The translations under genes were made by a program, and so were the position numbers. Shown piece by piece: positions 51,039 through 57,280 of a DNA stretch of 64,000 bases. The stretch's first letter is position 1. Every line of letters starts with the position of its first letter. The stretch lies in sequence record NC_062581.1. One strand, given 5' to 3'. The notes under the pieces were generated by a model. That model was given only the letters and a program-made list of their open reading frames with translations, was not told the DNA's origin and did not search any database.

Positions 51039-51212
51039 GTGTTAATAGACAACCCACCTGTAAATTGGTTACATGCAGTAGGTACCCTGTTGTTGGCACT
51101 CAGTTATTTGTTATGCCACGGCACTTTTGGTAAGAACAAAGCATTAGTTAACTTAGGGATTCTAGTATTCATGCTAGGGGTTGCCTCTATTACCGCAGCT
51201 GAACTTAAGTAA
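51039..51212 (+). CDS. small two-TM membrane protein (57 aa, not in ORF track)
   Basis: GTG start; WLHAVGTLLLALSYLLC and ALVNLGILVFMLGVASITA hydrophobic helices. Confidence 0.5.
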   Translation: MLIDNPPVNWLHAVGTLLLALSYLLCHGTFGKNKALVNLGILVFMLGVASITAAELK

Positions 51213-51218
51213 CTTAAT

Positions 51219-51239
51219 AAATCTCAGATCTATATTACT
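51219..51239 (+). promoter_or_regulatory. early promoter (variant A)
   Basis: AAATCTCAGATCTATATTACT. Confidence 0.8.
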
Positions 51240-51274
51240 ATCTTGAATTCAAGACCATTCCTTAGGAGTATTAC

Positions 51275-52021
51275 ATGCAACAAGTTCAAACAGATACCAA
51301 CATGTGCCGCGTTATGATGAATGCAATGATCCAATGGATGATTGATACCAACATGGCTCAACGTATTCACGTAGTAACTGACGCAACCATGTTTGACGTG
51401 GGTATCTTGAAAAACAATGTAAACGGTTTGTATCAAATCGTACTGAACATTGCCGCATCGGCTGTTCGTAATTTCTCATACAACGAACATACCTTCAGTT
51501 TTAACTGCTCCAATAATGGTGTTGACGTTCCTCTGAATGTCCCATATGAAGCAGTGTTGGGTTTCCTGATTCCTACCGCTGAAGGTTACACTTCTTTCTT
51601 CCCTATTCCAAACATGGAACGGGAATTGCTTGCTCTTCAAAAGACGCAAAACATGTTGCAAGAACTGGATCAATTGGATCTGGGTGATGATGCTCCGTCA
51701 ATGGCGCAGTTGAATGAACTCATGCGTGGTGTAGGGGTTAATGAACCGGCCAAACCAGTTGAGTCTTCCCCATACGCGGTACATGGTCTTAACACAAATA
51801 GCGGTGAAGACGACACTAACACCCACGCTAATTCTTTGCCCACCAATGTTGAACTCATGCGTCGTAAACCATTCACTGAACGTCCGGTGGCAAAAGTTGA
51901 AAAAGAAGCCCCACGACCATTGTTGGATTTTGGTCCAGTTGGCGGTGTAGTGTTTCAATCTAAACGTCCACGTCGTAAAGACGGTCCGAACCTGACCCTT
52001 ATCCAAGGCGGAAAGAAATGA
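51275..52021 (+). CDS. sspB: stringent starvation protein B (ClpXP adaptor) homologue
   Basis: QWMIDTN..RIHVVTDAT, QIVLNIAASAVRN, FSFNC..G....VPYEAVLG match the SspB core; C-terminal GPNLTLIQGGKK resembles the ClpX-binding tail. Confidence 0.82.
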   Translation: MQQVQTDTNMCRVMMNAMIQWMIDTNMAQRIHVVTDATMFDVGILKNNVNGLYQIVLNIAASAVRNFSYNEHTFSFNCSNNGVDVPLNVPYEAVLGFLIPTAEGYTSFFPIPNMERELLALQKTQNMLQELDQLDLGDDAPSMAQLNELMRGVGVNEPAKPVESSPYAVHGLNTNSGEDDTNTHANSLPTNVELMRRKPFTERPVAKVEKEAPRPLLDFGPVGGVVFQSKRPRRKDGPNLTLIQGGKK

Positions 52022-52740
52022 ATTTGTGCGAACTACGTGCACACGTCATGCGGCGTGATTCTACACGCATGGCGGCAATCTTCAATGAACTAAAAGAAGA
52101 TTCACAGTTTAAACAATTTGATATTTACGAGATGAATGACTTTTTGTTTCGTGAACTGGTATGGGCACCCGAAGAAGTGTCGGTTGATTCCAGAGAACTA
52201 TATCAAATCAACATCCGAACTATCCCCATGGTTCGTTACGGCAATGGTAATCTGTGTATCCTTCCTGAAGATGCACAAACATTCTGGCCAAGTCTGAATG
52301 ACATTACTAACCCCCATACACCTATTCATGACATGGTTCATGCTGCATTGGTCAACCATGTTACAGGTTGGGACCTGCGCATCGATGCGCCAGCCATGCG
52401 AATGCCGGTTCCTTTCACCTACGATCAACTGCGTCAGAATTTTGATGGCATTGTTGTAGGTGCGGAAAAAGTCATGTATTTGGATACCGAACTGAAAGTA
52501 GCCAAACTGACCAAGCACTTAACTATTACTGTGGTTTTGTTGATTACACCAAACGTGCTGTACGCATTGGGAAATCAGAAATACGGCGGAGAACGTACTG
52601 GTTTCTATACTTGCGACAATTCACTAAAAACAGAAGTGGAAGATAGCGAACTACCATTCGATCAGAATGAAAGTTTCTATGCGCACCTTACCAAAAACAG
52701 TTTTGATGCAACTGTAATGTTGCTACCGGGGCTTGAGTAA
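52018..52740 (+). CDS. hypothetical protein
   Basis: 240 aa; ATGA overlap with sspB. Confidence 0.7.
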   Translation: MNLCELRAHVMRRDSTRMAAIFNELKEDSQFKQFDIYEMNDFLFRELVWAPEEVSVDSRELYQINIRTIPMVRYGNGNLCILPEDAQTFWPSLNDITNPHTPIHDMVHAALVNHVTGWDLRIDAPAMRMPVPFTYDQLRQNFDGIVVGAEKVMYLDTELKVAKLTKHLTITVVLLITPNVLYALGNQKYGGERTGFYTCDNSLKTEVEDSELPFDQNESFYAHLTKNSFDATVMLLPGLE

Positions 52741-52743
52741 AAC

Positions 52744-54108
52744 ATGACTTTTCAAGATGTGTTGGGCTTTTATCATGAAACGCTTAACTTGTTGTCTCAT
52801 GGGGATTCAACCGTAAAAGGTTTCCTTGTGTTAGGTATCATGGGTGCACTGGGCTGGATTGGTCGTACATGGCCAGCTATGTTCATTGCATTCATTCGAC
52901 GTAACATCATTGCGTCTATGACATTCACTCGTGCTGGGTCCTATTCAATGGACCTACAAAACTACGCAGAATTCATGCGTTGGTTCAGTGAATCTAAATG
53001 GGCAAAGTATGATCGCAATCGTCGAGTAACATTTGACCGCGATAATCCTTATTTTGGACCAGGAGCAGGTTTTCACTGGTTCATCCATAATGGCCGCTAC
53101 TTCTGGTTTCATGTGGTGCGTTTGAATTCCTCGGGTACAGATATCGAGAAAGAAGAATTCACCCTTTATACCTTCGGTCGTGATACTGCTCCGCTGGAAG
53201 CAATTGTAGAAGAGTTCCGTATTAAACCATGCAAAAGTTCTATACGTATCTTTGCACCTAATGATGGTGATTGGAAACGTCAAGGCAAATTGCGTTTGGA
53301 TGCGGATGAAACTCTCATCATTGACCCGGACGTGGAACAAGAGTTCTTTGGTTCACTGGACTGGTACATTAACAATGAGGCATGGTATCGTAAACGTGGT
53401 CGTGCTTACAAACACACGGTCATCCTGCACGGCCCACCTGGTACCGGTAAAACGTCTCTGATCAAGCGTGCAGCGCGTAAGTATAAACGTGACTTGCATT
53501 TCTTGAATTTGTCAACACACGGTCGTTCTCTGGCAGAACTGGTAGCTAAATTGCAACCGGGTGACATTCTCTGCATTGAAGACTTTGATGATGTGCGTTC
53601 TTTGCATCGTCGAGTAGAAACCAAAACGGTTGGTGTAACCGATGGTGATGATAGCAAAAGCCCTGGTGCTTTGCTGATGGATTGTGACATTGCACTGAGC
53701 ACGTTCTTGAACGTATTGCAAGGTGTTGTGGAACTTGATGACATCATCATTATCATGACTACTAACCACCTGGAAAAGATTGACCCAGCTGTTTACCGTC
53801 GTTCTCGCGTAGACAAATTGATCGAAGTCCTGCCTCTTAAAGATGCAGAGATTAAACGCTACATCGATCAGATGTATGATAATCCTACTTACGATCGTAA
53901 TGTAATGTATCCAGATGTACCGGCTTCTACTTTGTCCGGTATATTCCAGGAACACCCAGACGATCATCTGGCTTTTATTAATAAGCTAGATTCCTTGGAT
54001 GATGCGTACATCGCTAACAACTACGCATTACAACCAGAACCTAAACGGCCACCAGTGATTAAAAAGGAACCTGCTCCTGCATTGGAGGCTGTTGCTCTAT
54101 CGGAATAG
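52744..54108 (+). CDS. BCS1-like membrane AAA+ ATPase
   Basis: N-terminal TM helix and BCS1_N-like region; GPPGTGKT, IEDFD, LSTFLNVLQG, TTNHLEKIDPAVYRRSRVD. Confidence 0.82.
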   Translation: MTFQDVLGFYHETLNLLSHGDSTVKGFLVLGIMGALGWIGRTWPAMFIAFIRRNIIASMTFTRAGSYSMDLQNYAEFMRWFSESKWAKYDRNRRVTFDRDNPYFGPGAGFHWFIHNGRYFWFHVVRLNSSGTDIEKEEFTLYTFGRDTAPLEAIVEEFRIKPCKSSIRIFAPNDGDWKRQGKLRLDADETLIIDPDVEQEFFGSLDWYINNEAWYRKRGRAYKHTVILHGPPGTGKTSLIKRAARKYKRDLHFLNLSTHGRSLAELVAKLQPGDILCIEDFDDVRSLHRRVETKTVGVTDGDDSKSPGALLMDCDIALSTFLNVLQGVVELDDIIIIMTTNHLEKIDPAVYRRSRVDKLIEVLPLKDAEIKRYIDQMYDNPTYDRNVMYPDVPASTLSGIFQEHPDDHLAFINKLDSLDDAYIANNYALQPEPKRPPVIKKEPAPALEAVALSE

Positions 54109-57244: not shown

Positions 57245-57280
57245 GGGTCCCTTCGGGGACCCTTCCTATTTTCTTTTTTG
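57245..57280 (+). terminator. UUCG terminator
   Basis: GGGTCCC-TTCG-GGGACCC then a T-rich tail. Confidence 0.75.

Follow-up and report, generated by a model that had tools for sequence, protein, structure and literature searches.

PSA21_299, a gene of Pseudomonas phage Psa21 that is annotated as a hypothetical protein in MK552327, encodes a so far unannotated SspB-like protein of a known kind. Judging from its folded core and its C-terminal tail, we lean, though not strongly, towards regarding it as a ClpX-tethered adaptor of the SspB type that would act in the cytoplasm of the host. Its variant architecture, comprising a long motif-bearing linker and an XB motif extended by GGK, is, at the level of sequence, partly shared with gp232 of phage phiKZ.

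The stretch of 64,000 nucleotides analyzed here (the window) corresponds to bases 186001-250000 of the Psa21 genome (305,260 bp, genus Tepukevirus), and the positions below are those of the window. Psa21 is a phiKZ-like jumbo phage that infects the kiwifruit pathogen P. syringae pv. actinidiae (PMC6544186), and its genes include counterparts of PhuZ and of the shell protein of the phage nucleus. The coding sequence of PSA21_299, established as an open reading frame and by its Pfam match, occupies 51275-52021 on the plus strand and specifies 248 residues. A ribosome-binding site, AGGAG, can be read directly at 51264-51268 on the same strand, 6 nt upstream of the ATG. Four parts of the protein, all encoded on the plus strand, can be distinguished. 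The SspB-fold core (residues 1-113; 51275-51613), composed of an N-terminal helix and a beta-sandwich, was delimited by Pfam, AlphaFold and Foldseek. It is followed by a predicted helix (residues 114-133; 51614-51673), seen in the AlphaFold model and the family alignment, which starts with an invariant PN-ER motif (residues 112-116). Subsequently, a long linker of low confidence (residues 136-236; 51680-51982) leads to the C-terminal XB-like tail GPNLTLIQGGKK (residues 237-248; 51983-52018), defined by alignment with the family and with bacterial SspBs.

Sequence and fold of the SspB-like core

The Pfam model of SspB (PF04386) matches residues 14-129 of PSA21_299 at 39.7 bits, above its cut-off of 27 (E 6e-10), and a genome-wide Pfam search returned this as the single SspB match in Psa21. 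A phmmer search against PDB SspB chains gave a match at E about 5e-5. The AlphaFold (AF2) model, a monomer built on 24 homologues, has a pLDDT of 85-92 for the core (residues about 11-130), the C-terminal half being of low confidence. Foldseek returned 13 PDB matches at E <= 0.001, every one of them an SspB, with target-normalized TM values of 0.65-0.74 and 26-28% identity, and the strand QIVLNIA is identical in PSA21_299 and E. coli SspB. Among phage profiles, phrog_25970 (E 2.9e-9) and phrog_8945 (“SspB-like”, E 5e-4) match the protein, and its structural matches in BFVD include PhiPA3 gp270, Phabio, Noxifer, PA7 and 201phi2-1. The SspB core claimed in the original prediction is thus confirmed, and a predicted structure that does not match SspB, named there as a possible refutation, was not what the model gave.

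It should be noted that the relationship stops at the level of the domain. PSA21_299 fails all NCBIfam SspB equivalog models (NF008762-NF008770), with a best score of 44 bits against a cut-off of 191, while P. syringae SspB reaches 248.8 bits on the same model; this failure counts against the adaptor reading. PSA21_299 is an SspB-domain protein but not an SspB equivalog. The pattern of conserved residues gives a more detailed picture. Among 81 bacterial SspBs, 42 core positions are at least 90% conserved, of which Psa21 keeps 17/42 and the phage family, at 70% or more, 11/42, namely W20, D23, Q50, I51, L53, N54, I55, A59, F72, G78 and P86 in E. coli numbering. Residues invariant in bacteria but lost in PSA21_299 are R75, F76, Y94, E97, N98, G99 and G101 (same numbering), a loss that likewise counts against an adaptor. 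In SspB, the ssrA groove and the dimer interface are the only regions of high conservation (PMC9963277), and these losses therefore imply that peptide specificity, dimer geometry or both may have changed. A diverged groove may allow an altered client specificity in PSA21_299.

The C-terminal ClpX-docking-type tail

The tail of PSA21_299, whose terminal string the original prediction had quoted exactly, aligns with RPSLKVVK of P. syringae SspB and RPALRVVK of E. coli SspB. Nearly all of the 80 gammaproteobacterial sspB loci compared, that of P. syringae included, end in [RK]PxL[KR][VI][VI]K followed by the stop codon. Relative to this pattern, PSA21_299 has T for K/R after the Leu and Q for the final K. 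The ends of phage SspBs form a graded series, running from PTLRVVK (pf16), PTLTVVK (RAY) and FLSVVK (FLC4-3B) through PKLTVIKGGKK (phiKZ gp232) to PHLRVIQGGKA (D6), PHLTVIQGGKA (RVTF4) and PNLTLIQGGKK (Psa21). This tail form is shared by 24/24 family members and by the distant phiKZ gp232, in which it is kept despite a core identity of ~27% and an unrelated middle region; the family alignment (n = 24) shows little or no variation at the tail residues I, Q, G, G and K. A relaxed XB pattern matched once in 170,660 aa of six-frame Psa21 ORFs, the match being the tail of PSA21_299 itself. These observations support the presence of a ClpX-tether (XB) motif of the form P-x-L-x-[VL]-[VI]-[KQ], as judged from alignment and conservation. 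The XB-like core PNLTLIQ does not, however, lie at the extreme C-terminus, since the four residues GGKK follow; this extension and the two substitutions count against the adaptor reading.

In bacteria, the SspB tail binds to the N-domain of ClpX (PMC9963277, PMC7226468). Replacement of the last eight residues of P. aeruginosa SspB by alanine changed ClpX binding from 27 nM to 179 nM, about 7-fold weaker (PMC13251409).

The linker

At 248 aa, compared with 165 aa in E. coli SspB and 137 aa in the SspB of the host P. syringae, PSA21_299 is truly expanded, as the original prediction had stated from the E. coli comparison. The same prediction described the expanded linker as acidic; its length stands, while its charge is mixed, with a mild excess of acidic residues at 136-200 (9 D/E, 5 K/R) and a basic stretch at 201-248 (pI 10.6). 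Residues 136-236 have a pLDDT of 43-68 and are almost without secondary structure, which fits a flexible linker longer than that of bacterial SspBs.

The family alignment reveals three conserved islands in this region, all on the plus strand: SSPYAVHGL (residues 164-172; 51764-51790), SLPTNVELMRRKPF (residues 187-200; 51833-51874) and RPLLDFGPVGG (residues 214-224; 51914-51946). Conservation is 0.64-0.79 within the islands and drops to 0.25-0.37 between them, the core standing at 0.63. With these conserved islands, the linker is more than a featureless spacer. Neither bacterial SspB nor phiKZ gp232 has a counterpart of them. Such conserved motifs have no role in the canonical SspB mechanism, and they count against the adaptor reading.

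Promoter-like motif and transcription unit

A promoter-like motif, AATCTCAGATC-TATATTAC-TA, is located at 51220-51240 on the plus strand and, on the basis of motif counts and conservation, is a putative early promoter of the virion RNA polymerase. Its octamer TATATTAC occupies 51231-51238, 36 nt ahead of the PSA21_299 ATG, and reads CTATATTAC (51230-51238) when the preceding C is included. Within the 64-kb window, CTATATTAC occurs in 8 copies, all on the plus strand, against 0.33 expected, and copies of TATATTAC are found at 589, 21115, 22245, 27263, 35716, 45446, 47356 and 51231. The whole Psa21 genome holds 31 copies of TATATTAC, again all on the plus strand; an ORF starts no more than 120 nt downstream in 29/31, mostly at 20-45 nt. 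The motif is kept at the same place 5' of the orthologues in five relatives, namely D6, RVTF4 and three metagenome contigs.

In jumbo phages that encode RNA polymerases, a conserved AT-rich motif of ~10 nt ahead of early operons is recognized by the virion RNA polymerase (PMC7598289), and in phiKZ, 32 early promoters of AT-rich sequence give rise to 5'UTRs of 31-40 nt (PMC8244752, PMC10914365). The Psa21 motif displays these features, being conserved, AT-rich, confined to a single strand and placed ahead of operons, and the way its number, strand and spacing agree with phiKZ is good reason to infer an early promoter. By this analogy, the TATATTAC site looks like an early promoter of the virion RNA polymerase, and, from the promoter motif together with the comparison with phiKZ, early expression of PSA21_299 is plausible. 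Of the early promoter originally proposed ahead of this gene, the motif itself is present, repeated and kept in relatives, while the word “early” holds by analogy. None of the RNA runs searched contained this locus.

Two extended flavors of TATATTAC can be observed, one with AAATCTCAGATC before and TA after the octamer, the other with TTTAAAAnATTTAAAAGGC before and AA after it, and the flanking letters give hints of two promoter subclasses. Immediately 5' of the promoter motif ends PSA21_298 (51039-51212, plus strand), which encodes a very hydrophobic protein of 57 aa with two likely membrane helices.

A terminator-like GC hairpin with a T-run lies at 57245-57262 on the plus strand, directly 3' of a NAMPT-like gene. 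This strong hairpin suggests a six-gene unit starting at the SspB-like gene, in the order SspB-like, 240-aa protein, BCS1-like AAA+ ATPase, small ORF, Prs-like and NAMPT-like, and on sequence grounds the hairpin is the likely end of the unit begun by PSA21_299. Between 47000 and 64000, matches resembling sigma-70 promoters number 25, fewer than the 36.3 +/- 5.2 in shuffled sequence. This scarcity is consistent with host-independent transcription.

Neighboring genes

PSA21_300 (52018-52740, plus strand; 240 aa) starts within the stop codon of PSA21_299, the two overlapping as ATGA. Its synteny is conserved and its C-terminus is an invariant PGLE. No Pfam match, no Atlas match and no similarity to phiKZ gp233 were found for it. 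An AF2 model from a shallow alignment (pTM 0.71) resembled Nudix folds only weakly (E 7e-4, TM below 0.5), and inspection by eye revealed no Nudix box. The gene lies in the same predicted unit as the Prs-like and NAMPT-like genes.

PSA21_301 (52744-54108, plus strand) encodes a BCS1-like AAA+ ATPase, identified by the Pfam domains BCS1_N and AAA and by phrog_7485 (E 4e-108). Its annotation as “cell division protein FtsH” was rejected in favor of this domain composition. Phage records with a homologue number 162, and many are those of jumbo phages, across several host genera. The SspB-like and BCS1-like genes are syntenic in every family member examined. This synteny carries little weight, however, because the genomes concerned are collinear relatives of one clade and the two phiKZ genes lie ~30 kb apart; a functional link between PSA21_299 and PSA21_301 was accordingly rejected as a main reading and retained only within a minor alternative discussed below.

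Family, origin and relatives

The PSA21_299 family comprises 24 members in contigs of jumbo-phage size (about 305-318 kb). A phylogeny against host SspB, which had been proposed as a check, was run on the SspB core. The Psa21 family groups as a single clade (SH-aLRT 99) whose stem is long, at 1.87 changes per site. This clade is separate and far from the tight Pseudomonas SspB clade and is weakly paired with phiKZ gp232 (support 73), a long-branch placement that is unsure. In an alignment of 86 residues, PSA21_299 and P. syringae SspB are 29% identical. Recent capture from the host was rejected on account of this low identity and the long separate stem, and, judged by the tree, the phage lineage to which PSA21_299 belongs is old. 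Many jumbo phages infecting Pseudomonas, Erwinia, Ralstonia, Xanthomonas, Aeromonas and Vibrio carry SspB-like genes, and relatives already annotated as SspB include the RVTF4 orthologue and two JGI homologues.

Bacterial SspB (E. coli b3228, and its P. syringae and P. aeruginosa counterparts), the specificity-enhancing factor of ClpXP, has the same fold (TM 0.65-0.74), the identical QIVLNIA strand and the same three-part plan, in which a folded core and a flexible linker are followed by a short C-terminal motif P-x-L-x-[VIL]-[VI]-[KQ]. PSA21_299 differs in its 248 aa as against 137-165 aa, with 29-31% identity over about 90 residues, and in having three linker motifs, a basic second half of the linker and GGKK after the tether motif. 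Furthermore, it is phage-encoded and stands behind a phage promoter.

The nearest relative in a characterized phage is phiKZ gp232 (PHIKZ232, 302 aa, phrog_25970). Like PSA21_299, it combines an SspB core, 27% identical between the two, with a long insert and the end PxLT[VL]I[KQ]GGKK, whereas its middle region is unrelated and looks helical, and its gene lacks both a neighboring BCS1-like gene and a promoter motif directly ahead of it. When phiKZ was screened with transposons, 22 and 43 insertions fell in PHIKZ232 in the two tables, as against none in essential genes such as that of the shell protein. On the laboratory host, phiKZ can therefore do without this homologue, which counts against the adaptor reading.

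Erwinia phage RAY gp039 has been published as an “SspB-like ClpXP adaptor”, with cytoplasmic localization of its GFP fusion (Prichard et al., bioRxiv 10.1101/2023.02.24.529968), and the idea of a phage ClpXP adaptor is thus already in print for this protein. Like PSA21_299, it is an SspB homologue of a nucleus-forming jumbo phage, and the same anti-host role was proposed for it (bioRxiv 10.1101/2023.02.24.529968). It differs in its 150 aa, in its canonical terminal PTLTVVK, in having no extended motif-bearing linker and in its separate long branch in the tree. An earlier phage-borne SspB is gp18 of Pseudomonas phage pf16, for which a competitive role was proposed in 2017 (PMC5587285). With 128 aa, 49-68% identity to gammaproteobacterial SspBs and a canonical tail, it is a recent host-like copy, and pf16 is a T4-like phage, whereas Psa21 is a nucleus-forming jumbo phage. 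By their sequences, pf16 gp18 and FLC4-3B gp94 look recently host-derived. Our literature search found no biochemical test of any phage SspB. Gene 196 of Xanthomonas phage LucasX (L009 2953-3519) encodes an SspB-like core with 37% identity to E. coli SspB over 89 residues, and its C-terminus lacks any XB-type motif, making it a natural tail-less variant.

Proposed role and alternative explanations

The conservation of both the core and the tail fits the needs of a tethering adaptor. The original interpretation is supported in part, for the SspB domain and the tether motif; redirecting ClpXP to other targets, or competing for it, would be a possible function. In the reading that we prefer by a modest degree, PSA21_299 would probably be transcribed early, from the promoter of the virion RNA polymerase. 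Its SspB-fold core would then bind a short peptide signal on client proteins, which may be the ssrA tag or something else. The flexible region of ~110 residues ends in a motif homologous to XB, through which the protein would dock on ClpX, raising the local concentration of the client at ClpXP and leading to its degradation. Neither a ClpX zinc finger nor ClpP was found in the Psa21 genome, so that any such partner must be the host enzyme. As a source of tags of the phage's own, a tmRNA was looked for in Psa21 and none was found, only 9 tRNAs. The function of PSA21_299 would be accessory rather than essential.

During infection by nucleus-forming jumbo phages, early phage proteins and host defense proteins are together in the cytoplasm, where ClpXP works. 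With a conserved adaptor that plugs into ClpX, these phages would gain a means of influencing host proteolysis; the adaptor could eliminate host factors, set when early phage proteins are cleared, or block host stress signaling. The SspB-like family is widespread in jumbo phages of Pseudomonas, Erwinia, Ralstonia and other hosts, and the present analysis offers handles in the defined tail, the three linker motifs and phiKZ as a model with a dispensable homologue.

Competition at ClpX, with nothing delivered, is a rather unlikely alternative. Here, an early and abundant protein would saturate the ClpX N-domains, perhaps sequestering ssrA-like tags as well, and host adaptor delivery (SspB with AlgU-MucA, RssB with sigma-S) would be shut off, protecting phage proteins that are recognized through the N-domain. 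[quoted passage not shown] The tail being the best conserved part of PSA21_299, the large-scale replacement of conserved groove and dimer positions, and the location behind an early promoter, which fits host takeover, all point in this direction. Such a blocker, however, needs the tail alone, and very deep divergence has left the SspB fold, the QIxLNI strand and W21 in place.

The SspB fold may also have been reused independently of ClpX, the tail and the three linker motifs docking on another partner, such as PSA21_301 from the same predicted transcription unit, PSA21_300 with its translational coupling, or some unrelated protein of the host; we regard this as improbable. The order SspB-like, 240-aa, BCS1-like is kept, with overlapping stop and start, in Psa21, D6, RVTF4 and three metagenome contigs, the linker motifs match the core in conservation, and the tail deviates from a canonical XB terminus. 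The collinearity of all syntenic genomes nevertheless deprives the gene order of independent value as evidence, phiKZ has the same tail although its BCS1-like gene is ~30 kb away, and the tail grades smoothly into the canonical XB tails of other phage SspBs.

That PSA21_299 is a decaying or functionless captured host gene, as its strong divergence from host SspB (29% identity, 86 residues) and the transposon insertions tolerated by the phiKZ homologue could suggest, is very improbable and already close to refuted by the conservation pattern: the frame is intact, the single clade (support 99) has 29 invariant columns, tail and promoter are conserved, and homologues extend across jumbo-phage genera.

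A bolder variant of the ClpX-tethered adaptor, to which we give a low probability, is that of a viral “degrader hub” that dispenses with the ssrA-helper role. The remodeled groove and the motifs PYAVHG, LPTxxELMxRKP and PLLDFG would recruit new clients, and the XB-GGK tail would pass them to host ClpXP. The clients could be host defense or regulatory proteins, for example at the AlgU-MucA node, or early phage proteins sharing a C-terminal tail. If true, such a hub would be the bacterial-virus counterpart of the hijacking of host degradation machinery by eukaryotic viruses.

Outside the window, at genome positions 258991-270714, eight small ORFs share the C-terminal pattern [WFY]xxx[IV]N[ST] directly before the stop codon. 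The SspB-like core could be a common docking partner of these proteins.
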